Source: Fimbriosthenelais zetlandica (Eukaryota). From it: a DNA stretch of 64,000 nucleotides. Shown piece after piece: positions 1 through 8,678 of this stretch (the first letter of the stretch is position 1; the number at the start of each line of letters is the position of its first letter). The DNA lies in the NCBI GenBank assembly GCA_977030845.1, contig OZ365109.1, positions 17,608,001 to 17,672,000 of the forward strand. Reading direction: 5' to 3'. The notes under the pieces are model-generated. The model saw only the letters and a program-made list of their open reading frames with translations. It did no database searches and was not told the DNA's origin. Position numbers and translations under genes: made by a program.

Positions 1-3000
1 ACCAATGGTTTGACAACTTTTCAACGGATGCTCTTCCAAGCCAAAAAGAGTGGCTCCCAACGAAAGGAAGTCCAAGAGGCCGTCAACTCTTATTATGGCG
101 AGGAATCCCCCATGGTAAGCTCCATTGATTAAAGCTATACATTAAAGTCGTGTAAAAGAATTAAAGGTTTACTAAAACACAAATACTCGTATGCCCCAAC
201 CCCTCAAGAAAAATATATTTCTGGAACTAAAAATGGCACAACCAAATTTATGTGCAAAGTGACTTTGCAGCCACTTGAAACCCATATTAATATAATTAAA
301 AATGTTCAGATTCTTTTGCACTGCCCAACTTGTTTATACATTCAATGACCATAGTGAAACAAGGTATCCATTAATATTTCTCAATTATACCTCCTTTTTC
401 TTTTATAAAGGACTTAGATTGGATCAGCAAAAGTTCGCTCAACAATCTTCATGATGTTCATCAGTTATATACGAAAAGTCAACCCTTGAAGAAGGAAACG
501 CGTAATATATTTGTGACCGGAATGATGCAGGACATCAGGGACGACTTCCAAGTAGGTTTATTAAGATATTGAATTCCTAAATACAGAGAATATATGTGGA
601 ATTTGTATTCTAAGAAAGCCCGTTTTAAAATACTGTAAAACAGATTTGTATATATGTAATTGATATGTATAAATGACAAAAATGTAAACAAAAATACTAA
701 TTCCTTATGTCCTTACTATAAAATGTAATTATTCTTGTAGAATTTGATGCTTTACTGCTCACGGGATGTGGAAGCTACTCATGAGATTTTCCAGCATCTG
801 TGGCCAGTGTTTTGTAAAAGGTAATATCTTCCTGCCATGTGCTTTCTGATTTGTGACGTTTTGCTAATTCTTACATTATTCTAAATATTTCTAATTCTTA
901 TAGGTCTCCTGATTTTCATGGATTTACCCATTGTTTCCAAATTTTATTGAATGCCATATGTTTCTGTTTGCAGATTCCCTCATCCTGTGACGTTTGGCGG
1001 GATGTTAGAAATGAGCACAGCATACCTGCCAGTCAACCGTAACTGGCTTCGCTATATTGAGGCTTCCCAAAATATCTTCAATACCCTACAGCACGAGCTC
1101 AAAGTCACGCTCATGGGGCTAGCTAACAGTGGCTGCAAAATGCTCAAAGACCAAAGGTAGGCACCTCAAACCCTCTTCGTGTTTCCACATTTTTTTTTAG
1201 CTCTAAATCTTTTTTCATGAAAGAATTTAAATTAGGATGTTCATAAGGACATAAACATCCCATTTTCAATTTCCTTTTATATACAGGCATTTTGAATAAG
1301 TTTACTCCAATAAAAATGAATTGCTAAAACTGATCTATGATATCCTTGCTTTCCATTTATAAATTCAGTTACAAGAAGGATGTGTGGCTTTGGGATTTGG
1401 ACTGGACTTGTCAAAAACCGCGGATGAAGAAGATTAAATATCCAAAGAAAATGGAAGTAAGTTGAATCCCCACTATAGTGTATTCCATGTATAGGGTTTA
1501 GAGATGACAAAACTTATTTTACCACCCCAAAAATTATGAAATTATGCTACGGTTTCCAAACATTTTCACAGTATTTTCGAGCTGTTTTCAACTTGTTTGT
1601 GGACAAATTTGATGAGTCAATTTATCCAATCTGTTTATAAATTTACTGTAGATTCACAATAGTCAATTTGTCATATTTTCATACTTACAGGATGCTACAG
1701 CTAAAGAGAAAGCAGAATATGCGATAAAACTTGCTCATGAGTCCAGACCAGCCCGTCCTGTACACATGCCTGGCTACCCACAGTAAGTTTATCTAATTTA
1801 AAAAATTAACCCCCAGTTTTATTTAGTACATTTGTTCTTAAGTACCATATTGTTCCCACGTTTTCCCTCATGTGTGGATAATTTTCCATGTAGTTCTTTA
1901 CAAGTTGATGATGAAGCGGTAAAAGGTTTGAGCACTCGCATCATTTCTATGATGAAACTGGCCTATTCAATCGCGCTCTTCTTTGTGGGTTTTGTCAGAA
2001 GTTAGGTACACAAACCCTTTTCCGGGAGCGTACATTAGTAATGTTTGTAATCCACAGAACTTGGTGGGAGACCGAGCCTAGTTCCTTAAACCAAACAAAC
2101 AGGGGAGTTCGAATTGAACTTAATACAAAAATAATTCTGATTGATAAGGTGCAGTAGTAGTTATGGAAAGAGCCAGTGCAAATGATGACCCGGCAATTCT
2201 GAAACTTATGAACTTATGAATAATTATGTGTCTTTATATATAGAGTGAAAACAAATTGGAGAATGAATAATTTTAGAAACAGACTTACTGTCCAACCGTC
2301 AGTCTACAATATTATTTCTAAACTTCATTAAACGCTTATTTTAGTGCGATTTCAACTCGCTGGATTCAATGTTACATCCATTTGTGAAAAGAATTAAAGA
2401 AGAGTTTTCATGAATATTTTTCTAGATGGTATCGAGAGTTGTGCCCCAGGGACTCGGAGCTAGGTGGTGATGTCATACCAGGGCCGTCTAAGATATCCAC
2501 GTTAAAAAGAGTAGTTCCTAAACTTCTCCGTCTCACCTACCAGGGCTACCCGCTGCACTACAGCCGCCAGCTGGGCTGGGGCTATCTGGTACCCGGCAGA
2601 GACATGAGCACTCCCGAGGAGGAGATGGAGAGAGAATTAGCTATGCAGGAGGAACAGGTTGATGGTTGCACAGGAGAATATGTCTTTCCACTCAGGTAGG
2701 CTATTTGATTTTGGAGAAATTTTTTTTTTTTTAGTTAGAACTTGTATAGAGCCTTTTATGGGTCAATACCAGCTCACACTCTTGATTATAGTGGTCGAGT
2801 TCATTTCCAATCAAATATAGCTATTATAGCAAATACACCACTTTTAGAATATCATTTTCGACTTCCAGAAATAGGAAAATAGGAAAACGTGAATAACCTG
2901 TCACCCTGATATTCTCAAAGAGATGTGTACGACTGTATACATATGTATAAACATTTTATGTAATGATGATTATACATGTAGAACCTTTAACTATATAAAC

Positions 3001-6000
3001 ATGAAAATAGCTAATCTAGAGCTAATACAAATTTATGCGCGTTTATGGAGAAATGGCCAGTCCGAAGGCGAAGGAGTAAGTTATTTAAGAGTTTTAAACG
3101 CAGCATGTAATGACGACAAATAATCTGCTGGGGGTTTAAGTCAGCAGATACTGCCTGAGAGTTCCATGTTCCATGGGATGAGATATCCTAGATTGACGCA
3201 CCATTTGTGAATGCGAACAAAGCGCTTTTCCTATTTCTGGAAGTCGTATGTGACTTTATACCTTGGAATATGTCTGAGTTCAGTTCAAATCTAAAGTCAC
3301 CATCATATAATAGAGATAACATGGTAATCGCTTATTTCACCTTATGAATTCTTTTGTTTTAGTGAGCTATACGAGGTTTGTAAAGAAGCCTTGAAGCGTG
3401 AAATTTCCCGGGAGGAGGTTAGCGAAGAACTGCGTTCATCAATTTTTGAAAAACTAGAGATGCAGAACTTTCACGATCCGGACACATCTTCACTGTGGGA
3501 GCAACTTGCTGCCCAATGGTCATGGAAACCTAAACAGATGAAGGTATCAGATTATTAATTGTGTGAATTCACTATTATTTCCTCTATGAGCCAATCTTTG
3601 TCATATTGTGTAAAAATGTTTGGCAATTTTGCAACTGATCATGCTTGCACTTTATGTGCGTTGGAGCTAAAAGTATGAATTGATTGGAGACTGCAGTAAA
3701 ATTCTACCGTTCCAGTCCGGAACCCCAATGTTGTCAGGACCCTGGTTTCATGAAGGTGACGGTCCTTATGCAGAAGTAAACATTCCTGGTTGCTGGTTCT
3801 TCCGCCTTCCACACAAGGTAAATTGTGTTTGATTAAAAAATCTTTTCTATAATTAAAATTAATTTAATTTGATTTCATATAATCTCTTACGAAAATTGTT
3901 TTACAAGAATTTCATATGAAAATACTGAGTCCAACTTTCTCATTGAAAAGTTTGATTACAGGATGGAGCAGGGAATAGTACTGGGAACCCCTTATCCAAA
4001 GATAACCTCAAACGTATTGAAAGTGGCGAGATGAAGGCCAACAGTGGCACTAATGTTAATACAGTTCTCAAGAGGCATATATTCTGCTCATATTGGAAAA
4101 ATAATGAAGATCGCATACGGTAAGCTTAAGGCATTCAGGACTTTGTCTTCAGAGTCAATTAATTCTCGATATCCCTTATAAATAGTTGAAGATTTGCAAA
4201 CGTTCAAAAATATTTGACACTCGTGGAAAGTTTTATCAGAAAAATACCTCATGTCTAGAGAACTACTTTATACAGCACGTGGTATTTTTAATCAATCATT
4301 TACTCAAAATACATGGCAATTAAAGATTCGGAATCAAGTTAATGATGATAGTGTAAAAGGTTTGAGCACTTGGGTCTTTTCTATTCCAAAACTGGACCTT
4401 TCCATCGCGCTTTTGTTCGGGGAGGCCAGAGCTAGAGACAGCAATAGGCCTTTGGTACTGAGCGTACAAGAAAAAAAATGTGTTTGCCAAGAGGAGCAGG
4501 GTTAAAGTTGACCCTGGTCTGACCAGAAAAAAACATACAGAAGGTTTGCATTTATTGTAAGCCACTTATTTTAAGATGGAATAGGGACATTAGTAGGTAT
4601 GGTAAAGCCGGGTGCATATGATGACCGATTCACTCTGAAACTTGACTAAACATTTGTGGTTATCGATTTTTTGTTAAGGAAATTTTATTGCGATTATACT
4701 TAGGTTTTTGGTGCAATTTGTCTTAATTTACTTTCTTTTTCTCTCCCCAGGTCCCAGATTGTCGTACGCCTTGATCGAGATGATCTTCCAGATACTGTCT
4801 CAAGGTCAGTAACGCGTTTTGATTGTACCATCTTTTTTTAATTGAAAAGTGTTTAACTGCTATCTATGTAATACAAAAATAGTAGAACAGAAATAAAGGG
4901 AAGATGACTTAACAAAAGAGGAAAAATAGAAACAAACGAGAGAATACATGAGGGAGAGAGGAAAGAGACGGATAACGGTAGGATTAGTCGCAAGCAAGAA
5001 AGAGAAGAAAGTGCAGTAATATATTTTATTTCTGTTTCAATCTCCAGCAAATGGATTGAGGAGTTAAGGTAGTACATACTTTAACTTGGTATTGACATCA
5101 CTTGTGACCCCTATTGAATCTTTAATGCACCCACCTTGTTGAATTATTAACTTTTTATAAAATGAATGGACTGGAGAGATGATTGGACTGTGTTCTATTT
5201 TCTCATTTTCTTCTAATTTTATTTGTATCCACTATTATCTACCACTCTCCATATTTTTTCTCCCCACGGAATTCATGTCATGTTTTGTGTGTGGGTATGA
5301 AACCTCTAAATTGATTTTACTACTCTGTTGTTGGACCGCACTCTGTGTGATTGTGAATATTCTTGGTCGTTTTTTTCTATCCTGCGGAATCAATACTTTG
5401 TTACTCACTTCTGCATGGTGCACTTCGTCTGTCTTTTTTTCTTAATTTAAACTAATGATAAGCATGATGCAACGAAAAAAATTCTGCATTTTTTTCCAGA
5501 TATTTTTTCACATTTATTCCCTATTCATACCTTTGTGACACCACCCGGAACAAAAAAGGTTACAAGTTTCATTTCCTACCCACAAGGGTTTGCAGGAAGT
5601 GCAGGTCAAGAAGGGTCAGATACGGTCGCATTGAAGTGGGGACCTCGCTCTCTTTCTATGTTGTTCATATTTTTTCCAGATATTATGAATAGATTCTGAT
5701 ATAATTTTTCTTTACATTCTTACAGGGACAGTGGTTATGACAGCGAGACATTCTTTGGTGCTATTCTCCCGCGAGTTGTGACAGCTGGAACCGTCACAAG
5801 GAGAGCAGTGGAATCCACCTGGCTGACGGCCAGCAATGCCAGAGTATGTATAATTATCACTATAAATGATAACATCCGTTTATTTTATATTAGATCAATT
5901 ATTACTTATGAAAACCTGCTAAGATTTGCCCAAGTGCTGGGGTCATTGAATGTAAATATATTGACTTTTTGAAGAAACTGGTCCTTTGGAATGGTCGTCA

Positions 6001-8678
6001 AAGATTTATGTTCTAATTTTTGGTTTAATTCTTGGTTATTGTCAGGAGGACCGCATTGGGAGTGAGTTGAAGTCCATGATACAGGCTCCCCCGGGGTATA
6101 AATTTGTGGGTGCGGACGTGGACTCTCAGGAGTTGTGGATTGCCGCTATACTTGGCGATGCCAACTTTGCTGGAATGCATGGTAAGATATTTCTATTTCT
6201 ATTTTCTCATTTTAAGGTACCATGTCTTGTCCCAAAGCCAACACAGCATATCTGTATGAATTCAAAGGGAAAATGAAATTCTCTTGCGTAGGTAGAAAGT
6301 GATACATTGATAAATGATATTGATTGGTGGCTTTTTCTTGCTCGCAGGCTGTACAGCTTTTGGTTGGATGACTCTGCTGGGGAACAAGGCTGAGGGAACT
6401 GATCTCCACAGCCGAATAGCCGAGCAGGTCGGCATTACTAGAGAGCAAGCTAAGGTGGGTGTTGGTTTCAGCTTCCCCACTGGTCTAGTCTTATTTGTTG
6501 TATCCGATATACATCATTTTAAGATTTTCCCCCAAATTTTTAATGATTTTCTAATGGAAACCTTTGGGTGAAAATATTGTATCAAATCTGACATTTTTTT
6601 TTCAGATATTTAATTATGGTCGTATTTACGGTGCTGGGAATCGTTTTGCCGAGCGCTTGCTCCAACAGTTCAATCCGAAAATGCCTGTTGTTGAAGCCAA
6701 GAAGAAAGCCACTGCGCTCTATACTTACTCCAAAGGTAAACGGAAACGAATAATGGAGGATCCAGATGATGAGACGACCTACAGTCGGGTCTGGTTTGGT
6801 GGAACGTAAGTAAAAGTTAAATGTCGCGTTTGAAAAAACATGGTATATAATAATAGTGATTTATATAGATATACTGATTTCAGATAATTTCAGAATTACT
6901 TTTTACAACAATCAGTCGACTGGAATACATGAAAAGTACAAAATAATAGTAATTAAAAGTTAATAATGTTTTTTATAGGTAATGCCTTTTGAATTTTAGA
7001 GGTGCAACCCAAAAGCAAATAACCCCAAAACCTAAGTTCCAAAATAAAACTTAACTCTATCTGTTTCTTTACTGAACATTTGTCTTCGTTTTTTAGGGAA
7101 TCCTATATGTTCAACATGCTGGAGTCTATTGCCAATTCTTCTGGTCCGAGTACACCAGTTTTGGGTTGTAAAATCAGCAAGTCACTGGAGCCGCGACATG
7201 TCAGTTCACATGTGAGTACTGTGTCATAATTATGATTTAGTATAATTCTAATTTGAAATTCTCAAAAAATAATGTATAATCATGCCATATTGTGGTGTAA
7301 GGTACCTCTTCAAACCCTCCCCGCATATTGGTCAGTTTTATTTTCAAGGAGCTTCCCTTTTGTCAAATAGAGGAGTCAATTTTGCTTACTGACTTCTGTT
7401 CAATATTTGTTTGGATACCAGATTTGAAAATTATTTTGAAAAACTAAATATTAATCCTAAATACTGACTCCCTAGGAACCAGTGATTTTAGTCTGGCATT
7501 CTAATAAACATTGATTTGGGTTATAATGCATTTTCATAATATAAATGAACAAACTAAACAGAACAAAAAATACAGCAACTTTCATATTATATTCTTGATA
7601 TAAAAAACAATAAATTTATAATTTAAAAAATTGTCTTTTCAGTTCATGACAAGCCGTGTGAACTGGGTAGTACAGAGCTCGGCTGTAGACTACCTCCACC
7701 TTATGCTCGTGTCTATGCGCTGGTTGCTGGACGAGTACCATATTGACGGCCGCTTTAGTATCAGCATCCATGATGAGGTGCGGTACATGGTGTGTGAGCA
7801 GGACGTACTGCGAGCTGCTCTTGCCTTACAAATCACTAACCTACTCGTCCGCTCCATGTTTGCCTACAAGCTAGGCATGAACGATCTACCACAGGTGGGA
7901 TACATTCCTAATGTATTCAACTATAAAACAATAGAAAAACATCAGCATAACTTGAAATTTATAAAATTTGCAGGGAGTTGGGGTAGTGGCTCCAACCAGT
8001 GCTGCTAACTGGGATTCCTATATCAAATGCTAGCTATATAGGCCAGGCATATTTAGGGAGGAGTAGAAATTGTGTCCCGACAGCATTTTTCCTCTCGTCC
8101 TCAGAACATTAGATGTAATACATGATATAATATTGAATTTCACCCTCCGTTATGGGTCTATTTTTCTAGAAGACTTTGTGGACTGGAAAATATTTAAATT
8201 TCCGAAGAAAATACAACCGATTTTCAATACTTAATAAATGGGGGTTGTTTACAAGTTGAGCATGTTGATTGTTTCAGGCTGTCGCTTTCTTCAGCAGCGT
8301 GGATGTAGACACTTGTTTGCGGAAGGAAGTCAATATGGATTGTGTCACACCTTCCAACCCTCAAGGCATGCATCGAGGTTACAACATACCTCCAGGTATG
8401 AACGACCCAATAATTTACCAATGCTTATAATATTTTAAAATAAATTTATGAATTCTCATTCCAAGCATATTGTATTCTATATTACAATCCTGTTAAAAAA
8501 TTGTTAAAGTGGAGATTAATTTTTCACATTTTTCTTTGCAGGAGAATCTTTAACTATTTATGACATTATCAAGAAGACGAACGGATCCTTAAACAAGACA
8601 GAGAAAGACAGCGAAGCGCCATTGGTAGATGATGCAGATATAGACAGTGCTACAGAAGACATGTACTCACAAATATAA
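1..8678 (+). CDS. POLG: Mitochondrial DNA polymerase gamma catalytic subunit, 5'-truncated by the window edge, 19 exons visible
   Basis: GT-AG exons in continuous frame: 1-114, 411-551, 741-820, 974-1156, 1369-1456, 1691-1782, 2426-2695, 3363-3543, 3716-3817, 3962-4119, 4751-4804, 5726-5843, 6046-6181, 6348-6454, 6606-6805, 7097-7211, 7643-7894, 8278-8395, 8542-8678 (TAA). Pol gamma motifs: [52 protein letters not shown], motif [13 protein letters not shown], motif [13 protein letters not shown], motif [10 protein letters not shown]. Confidence 0.97.
1902..2207 (+). ncRNA. Intronic long box C/D RNA, U87/U88 (SCARNA5/6)-like scaRNA, copy 1
   Basis: In POLG intron 1783-2425. Terminal stem AAGTT(1902-1906)/AACTT(2203-2207); C box ATGATGA 1908-1914; guide GTAAAAGGT 1919-1927 complementary to U5 loop 1 GCCUUUUAC; D'-like TTGA 1928-1931; C' ATGATGA 2182-2188; D box CTGA 2199-2202. 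A paralog lies at 4334-4645. Confidence 0.8.
4334..4645 (+). ncRNA. Intronic long box C/D RNA, U87/U88 (SCARNA5/6)-like scaRNA, copy 2
   Basis: In POLG intron 4120-4750. Perfect 7-bp terminal stem TCAAGTT(4334-4340)/AACTTGA(4639-4645); C box 4342-4348; guide GTAAAAGGT 4353-4361; D'-like TTGA 4362-4365; C' ATGATGA 4618-4624; D box CTGA 4635-4638. Shares the 18-nt block GTAAAAGGTTTGAGCACT with copy 1. Confidence 0.8.

Follow-up and report, generated by a model that had tools for sequence, protein, structure and literature searches.

Two separate introns of one gene in a 64,000-nucleotide (nt) stretch of the Fimbriosthenelais zetlandica genome (contig OZ365109.1, positions 17,608,001 to 17,672,000; hereafter the window) each hold an element bearing the boxes of a methylation guide RNA, which raises the question of what kind of RNA, if any, this pair encodes. 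[quoted passage not shown] This proposal is supported by a match to the Rfam family SCARNA6, by the sequence of the genome's own U5 loop, by orthologs in a relative and by a composite fold, and we put at roughly 0.8 the probability that the elements are intron-encoded composite box C/D-H/ACA scaRNAs of the U87/U88 type.

The placement of the two elements was confirmed by examining the host gene. Both lie on the + strand of POLG, in two different introns: copy A, whose entire predicted scaRNA measures 306 nt, spans 1902-2207 within the intron at 1783-2425, and copy B, at 312 nt, spans 4334-4645 within the intron at 4120-4750. The coordinates and motifs of these paralogous elements are as previously described, and the surrounding introns indeed have no similarity, the likeness between them being limited to the elements. 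The exon at 2426-2697 (WYRELCP...), which lies downstream of copy A and serves as the marker of the host gene, matches, together with its neighbors, proteins named DNA polymerase gamma 1 or DNA polymerase subunit gamma-1. The exon at 3962-4119, upstream of copy B, gave no match as a protein query; the neighboring exon was used instead and matched. In the protein comparison no match of the POLG exon, apart from one relative, exceeds 66% identity, the best named relatives being a cyprinid fish (58%) and the millipede Chamberlinius hualienensis (60%), with a flatworm, an amphipod and a locust also among them; the protein atlas returned no match. As to the word "invertebrate", this divergence and the failure of the vertebrate Rfam model on the elements carry it as far as "not vertebrate-like", and no further.

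The same parts follow one another in both copies, namely a C box AUGAUGA, 4 variable nt, the block GUAAAAGGU, UUGA, a long interior, a second AUGAUGA, 10 variable nt and CUGA, enclosed by complementary terminal arms (AAGUU/AACUU in copy A and UCAAGUU/AACUUGA in copy B); each part that had been described (terminal stem, C box, guide block, C' and D boxes) is present in both. In copy A, the 5' terminal strand AAGUU (1902-1906) pairs with AACUU (2203-2207, assigned by pair counts), and the C box (1908-1914), which is unchanged across the alignment, is followed by the antisense element GUAAAAGGU (1919-1927), the D' box UUGA, a variant of CUGA (1928-1931), and, recognized by motif, the C' box AUGAUGA (2182-2188) and the D box CUGA (2199-2202). 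The corresponding parts of copy B, likewise recognized by motif, are the terminal stem (4334-4340 with 4639-4645), the C box AUGAUGA (4342-4348), the antisense element GUAAAAGGU (4353-4361, where the Rfam alignment agrees), the D' box UUGA (4362-4365), the C' box AUGAUGA (4618-4624) and the D box CUGA (4635-4638). The spacer from the C box to D' measures 13 nt, compared with a general box C/D expectation of about 12 nt, and the guide, for which at least 9 bp are expected, ends directly at D'. An 18-nt block starting GTAAAAGG is identical in the two copies, which resemble each other mainly at both ends and have an overall identity of 57.5%. To these parts we applied a comparison of four sequences, that is, copies A and B and their two orthologs in the relative, using RNAalifold and our own pair counts. 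The terminal stem, 5-7 base pairs (bp) long and bringing boxes C and D together, is kept in all four, with 95% of cells paired. No second guide was found upstream of box D: the 10 nt between C' and D vary among all four sequences, and therefore there is neither a second methylation guide nor a conserved target in this segment.

By searching the genome and Rfam, we identified how unusual this combination of parts is and which known family it resembles. The pattern "TGATGA, 2-6 nt, GTAAAAGGTYTGA" has exactly two occurrences in the 447-megabase (Mb) genome, both in the elements, and the reversed control pattern has none. BLAST of the genome with copy A returned only copy A itself and copy B, so the elements are not a dispersed repeat. 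At gathering thresholds, Rfam gave no match in the window. When the search was extended to an E value of 10, SCARNA6 (U88) was the only one of 4227 Rfam families to score E < 1 on the elements, and it matched both, with 24.9 bits (E 2e-4) for one and 20.7 bits (E 4e-3) for the other. The alignments leave out the interior and take in the terminal stem, C box, guide and D'; the orthologs in the relative also match it weakly (18.5 and 15.1 bits). The Rfam check of both intervals that had been suggested singles out the expected family, with scores below the gathering score of 68 bits. Separately, a weak match to the U7 small nuclear RNA (snRNA) at 2400-2448 (16.4 bits, E 2.8), lying across the 3' splice site of intron A, was taken as chance.

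U87 and U88 are assigned to residue U41 of U5, and the genome's own U5 was examined for this site. The Rfam U5 model has 43 matches in the genome; in all eight of the loci that were read, loop 1 is CGCCUUUUACU, and the complementary loop GCCUUUUAC bears out the proposed pairing with the guide. The block GUAAAAGGU pairs with U5 G37-C45 (human numbering), its 3' U forming a wobble on G37, and in copy A an extra G-U pair at U46 lengthens the duplex from 9 to 10 bp. The fifth guide nucleotide upstream of D' faces the equivalent of human U41, and the earlier placement opposite this residue therefore holds with the loop GCCUUUUAC found here. Stem 1 of U5 is 2 bp longer in this genome than in human U5, so the local residue number is higher than that of human U41. 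Regarding other targets, the core CCUUUUAC is absent from the genome's own 18S/5.8S/28S/5S unit and CCUUUUA from its own U1, U2 and U4; U5 is the only plausible target among the RNAs checked.

The genes read for these comparisons show their own organization. The ribosomal DNA locus was reached through a conserved 18S 3'-end primer string, after which Rfam confirmed 18S, 5.8S, 28S and 5S. In the unit L142 (G000:C34:842800-852799), 18S occupies 366-2268, 5.8S 2774-2927, 28S 3301-7259 and 5S 7923-8041; the 5S gene is on the same strand as 28S, about 660 nt past its end, and is therefore linked to the 45S unit. A tandem unit of about 4116 nt (G000:C34:394-1923 and following units), with at least 11 repeats on C35 (G000:C35:604202-646887), combines the U2, U5 and U1 snRNA genes on one strand. 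The U4 genes form a separate array at 50.90 Mb of C10, in which they are spaced about 590-650 nt apart.

Conservation of the elements was examined in the relative mentioned above. Searching protein representatives with the WYRELCP exon gave an 80-amino-acid fragment at 78% identity, and a 2.4-kb Logan contig (L011, run ERR14368248) has the same exon-intron structure around the counterpart of copy A, with an element carrying the same boxes and guide in the same intron (L011:1583-1877). On the copy B side, a 90%-identical exon fragment led to contigs L015-L017 from three runs; in L016, which has a counterpart of the exon at 3962-4119 (L016:1051-1206), the intron corresponding to that of copy B holds the second element (L016:1287-1580). 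The flanking POLG exons are 78-90% identical between the two species, and blastn of the orthologous introns gave alignments restricted to the elements and ending at their borders. The inspection of orthologous introns recommended in the earlier note thus turned out in its favor, both copies being conserved and the rest of each intron unalignable, which indicates that the pair is older than the split of the two species and was retained while the introns diverged. Within the relative, identity between the two copies reaches 70%, whereas each shares only 57-62% with its positional counterpart in the window, a relationship that suggests either gene conversion between the introns or unequal rates, with faster change in the window lineage. 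In more distant POLG genes, GTAAAAGGT was not found in the matching introns within the parts fetched (millipede L012, bioreactor eukaryote L013 and Logan contig L014); a single match to it in L012 is exon-adjacent and was taken as chance.

The four-sequence comparison further supports six helices, namely the terminal stem, the D'/C' stem, two closing stems and the lower and upper stems of a first hairpin in the interior. In these helices, 89-96% of cells are standard pairs, compared with 6-64% when the 3' partner is slid by 1-3 columns, and double-sided changes occur at 16 pairs across the four sequences. The stem that clamps D' and C' together has 4 bp. In copy A, the D'/C' stem and closing stems I and II have their 5' strands at 1932-1972 (92-94% paired, with 8 double-change pairs) and their 3' strands, in the order closing stem II, closing stem I, D'/C' stem, at 2139-2179, as assigned by alignment fold and pair counts. 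These data also revise a pairing between the segments after D' and before C' that had been claimed for both copies. For copy A, the pairing UUUCUAU/AUGGAAA stands, as part of closing stem I; for copy B, the claimed UUUCUAUUCCA/UGGAAUAGGGA is not the conserved pairing and is replaced by UUUCUAU/AUGGUAAA, as in copy A, and the second closing stem of copy B pairs CCUUUCCAUC with GAUGGAAUAGG.

Within the closing stems, the interior has the predicted layout of an H/ACA domain. Hairpin 1 (1973-2031 in copy A, with 8 double-change pairs; 4407-4465 in copy B, from folding and pair counts) has the shape of an H/ACA hairpin, with a lower stem, an internal-loop pocket and an upper stem topped by a loop. 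A hexamer fitting ANANNA abuts it in all four sequences (ACAUUA, AAAAUA, ACAAGA and ACAGCA), the putative H boxes of the window copies being ACAUUA at 2032-2037 and, by motif, ACAAGA at 4466-4471. A second hairpin is predicted thermodynamically at 2042-2097 in copy A, where its alignment-based support is weaker, and by folding at 4479-4535 in copy B. All four sequences have ACA after hairpin 2; in the window copies, motif and folding place the candidate ACA boxes at 2099-2101 and 4537-4539. Between ACA and the 3' strands of the closing stems lies a linker of about 40 nt, which contains a small hairpin.

The pocket of hairpin 1 was considered as a possible guide in its own right. Its 3' strand YUUUUCC, the lower stem and an ACA-type H box are common to copy A (2013-2037), its ortholog (L011:1690-1714) and a family of metagenome sequences described below, and a pocket strand conserved in this way may be the mark of a pseudouridylation target. 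No convincing site for it was found in the genome's own ribosomal RNAs or in U1, U2, U4 and U5, where the search gave loose matches in 28S and one in U1; no pseudouridine is known at the U1 site. Nor do the H/ACA pockets have conserved complementarity to U5. Copy B and its ortholog have lost this shared sequence, including the UUUUUCC pocket strand that copy A and the metagenome family keep. This loss, like the overall identity of only 57.5% between the window copies, could be taken to mean that one copy, or each of them, is a duplicate in decay (a pseudo-scaRNA) that no longer matures into a stable ribonucleoprotein (RNP). However, in two species whose flanking introns have diverged past alignment, neither copy has lost the guide, the helices or any of its four C/D-type boxes, and decay is accordingly a very improbable account of the pair.

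Several observations weigh against a composite scaRNA of the U87/U88 type and should be considered together. Neither element reaches the SCARNA6 gathering score of 68 bits, and the interior stays unaligned to the vertebrate model. Searches for sequencing runs of this DNA, made with the element by itself and with 1690-4800, listed none. The D' box is UUGA instead of CUGA, and the guide duplex is only 9-10 bp long with a G-U pair included. Hairpin 2 and the ACA box come mostly from single-sequence folding, the MAFFT alignment being inconsistent in this part. Our own H/ACA scanner failed on the relative's copy B and on vertebrate positive controls, and was given no weight because it is too strict. 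The signal for a CAB box (ugAG) amounts to AG in the terminal loops: each predicted H/ACA loop has a purine-rich run ending in AG (GAAG, AGAG, AAAG and GGAG), which is a low-information motif.

Some of these points fit a different kind of RNA, a long scaRNA with box C/D function only, comparable to other invertebrate C/D scaRNAs, in which both copies would guide U5 modification and the interior would be a structured relic or an unrelated insert that does not bind dyskerin. Hairpin 2 and the ACA box align poorly among the four sequences, the pocket sequences are not conserved in all four, and the energies found by the H/ACA scanner are sometimes equalled by shuffles of the interior. Set against this are the H/ACA geometry and many compensatory changes of hairpin 1, the ANANNA hexamer abutting it and the ACA after hairpin 2 in each of the four sequences, and the recurrence of the same part order in both the SCARNA6 consensus and a 12-member metagenome family. 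We consider the box C/D-only alternative unlikely and favor the composite C/D-H/ACA scaRNA. Because the elements fail the Rfam threshold, formal membership of RF00478 as Rfam defines it is not claimed for them; their design and mode of action appear nonetheless to be those of U87/U88.

Comparison with known guide RNAs places the pair more precisely. The SCARNA6 consensus consists of a terminal stem, C, GUAAAAGGU, CUGA, nested closing stems, a first hairpin, an ACA-type H box, a second hairpin whose loop is GUGAGC, ACA, closing stems, a degenerate C' and D. For reading this consensus structure, and only for that, we used the metagenome contig Ga0065711_1012345 (L025 and L038), on which two guide-bearing elements lie about 7.3 kb apart, one of them scoring 134.7 bits on SCARNA6; it looks like a vertebrate U87/U88 pair from host or contaminant DNA. 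The window elements share with U87/U88 (SCARNA5 and SCARNA6; RF00478) an identical GUAAAAGGU next to D', the order of parts with the H/ACA domain between D' and C', the presence of two paralogs within a single host gene, each in its own intron, and an approximate size (about 265-275 nt, compared with 306-312 nt here). They differ in having UUGA instead of CUGA as D' and a canonical C' box AUGAUGA instead of the degenerate one of the vertebrate consensus, in a longer linker past ACA, in an interior that the vertebrate model cannot align, and in their host gene, which is POLG here and ATG16L1 in human.

Guides for the same U5 loop are also known outside this family. U85, a composite C/D-H/ACA scaRNA acting on the same loop, guides Cm45 and pseudouridine 46, not Um41. 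This RNA (SCARNA10; Drosophila MeU5-C46) is conserved between vertebrates and invertebrates (PMC6984369), and in human U87, with which the layout here agrees, nt 27-183 make up the H/ACA domain, which includes the CAB box (PMC3884663, PMC6298559). Drosophila U5 carries Gm38, Um42 and Cm46, equivalent to human Gm37, Um41 and Cm45 (bioRxiv 10.64898/2026.05.21.726978), and the fly guide for Um42 is mgU5-42 (snoRNA:MeU5:U42, CR33716), which co-precipitates with WDR79 and Sm proteins (PMC3884663, PMC4053861). The likeness of the window elements to mgU5-42 lies in the assignment of a guide to the equivalent U5 position. Since mgU5-42 is already established for this site, a non-vertebrate guide for the U5 Um41 position is not in itself new.

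The search was then widened to metagenome data. A C box followed by GUAAAAGGU and YUGA is present in at least 120 JGI metagenome contigs (L020-L139), a fair share of which may, given the size of the collection, have matched by chance. In at least 28 contigs a terminal stem of at least 5 bp (at least 7 bp in 16 of them) closes an RNA of 250-415 nt that ends in CUGA, and several subfamilies can be distinguished (L037/L043/L107/L133; L023/L070/L137; L048/L086; L105/L115). Among 20 such contigs scanned, the SCARNA6 gathering score was passed by one, the vertebrate-like contig, and by none of the 19 others. Twelve diverged members of one subfamily (e.g., L022, L050, L054, L077, L099 and L126) have the same composite fold, with closing stems and covariation. 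With the window elements this family shares the C box, GUAAAAGGU, the UUGA that serves as D' in many of the metagenome homologues, and an ACA after hairpin 2; it differs in its degenerate C' (UGAUUA) and in the sequences of its closing stems. As in copy A, UUUUUCC..GAGCAUACA forms the end of its hairpin 1, and the subfamily, copy A and the ortholog of copy A have UUUUUCC..GAGCRUACA in common on the 3' side of this hairpin. One pair of the lower stem is changed on both sides, being C-G here and U-A in the metagenome subfamily. Taken together, these features speak for an H/ACA domain that is truly homologous among distant organisms.

The host gene of the metagenome family was sought as well. A tblastn search with nine POLG exons found none of them on the guide-bearing contigs within the DNA fetched, and 10 open reading frames around the L050 element gave no Pfam match that would name a host. 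Given these results and the distant POLG genes that lack the guide in their fetched parts, POLG as a host gene looks lineage-specific. The same observation bears on the idea that the elements act in POLG at the level of DNA or pre-mRNA, as a splicing enhancer, a regulatory element or a low-copy repeat, with snoRNA-like boxes arising by coincidence. The intronic location alone would fit such a role, but the elements have only two genomic copies, their RNA helices are maintained by compensatory base changes, and the exact U87/U88 guide adjoins a D' box among boxes in the right order and spacing, while contigs of other organisms carry the same string with no match to the nine tested POLG exons within the DNA fetched. 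We give this explanation hardly any credence, and the composite scaRNA reading stands.

Under that reading, the RNA would be released from the spliced POLG intron and trimmed by exonucleases down to the RNP. Fibrillarin, Nop56, Nop58 and 15.5K would bind both at the C and D boxes joined by the terminal stem and at the D'/C' pair clamped by its short stem, and the 9-10 nt of GUAAAAGGU directly 5' of D' would pair with U5 loop 1 GCCUUUUAC. The fifth guide nucleotide upstream of D' would then face human U41, the second uridine of the UUUU run in the loop, and direct its 2'-O-methylation. Recruitment of the dyskerin complex would fall to the H/ACA domain inserted between D' and C', whose role is most likely stability and targeting to Cajal bodies rather than that of a conserved pseudouridylation guide. 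RNA accumulation, the RNA ends, protein binding, localization and the methylation itself are in this scheme predictions from sequence. The earlier note had further seen here a tie between a spliceosomal modification guide and POLG transcription; the elements are intronic in POLG, but such a tie is merely the ordinary consequence of intronic hosting. Intronic guide RNAs ride on the transcription of their host, and the POLG location gives no ground for a functional link to mitochondrial DNA replication.

Overall, the result is modest, a sound annotation of a known and fairly ordinary kind of RNA and not a surprise. New here are a clear example of the composite U87/U88 type that the vertebrate model does not reach, the hosting of a paralogous pair by a single gene, the difference in host, and a well-supported non-vertebrate case in which covariation underpins the fold. 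The Rfam SCARNA6 model misses such RNAs, as its record on the 19 non-vertebrate-like candidate contigs illustrates, and the four sequences together with the metagenome family could serve annotation as the starting set of a broader covariance model. The guide for U5 Um41 would appear to move between host genes while the arrangement of two copies in one gene is kept. More tentatively, and as a combined possibility that we think rather doubtful as a whole, composite U87/U88 RNAs may be an old and widespread animal family, perhaps a wider one, that Rfam thresholds miss, in which hairpin 1 of copy A is still a working pseudouridylation guide; conservation of the pocket GUG / UUUUUCC between this genome, the relative and an unrelated metagenome family is part of that joint reading. 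We know of no target assigned to the H/ACA domain of vertebrate U87/U88. If this were true, the composite U87/U88 design would not be a vertebrate invention, and RNAs of the copy A type would, unlike the vertebrate ones, be bifunctional.

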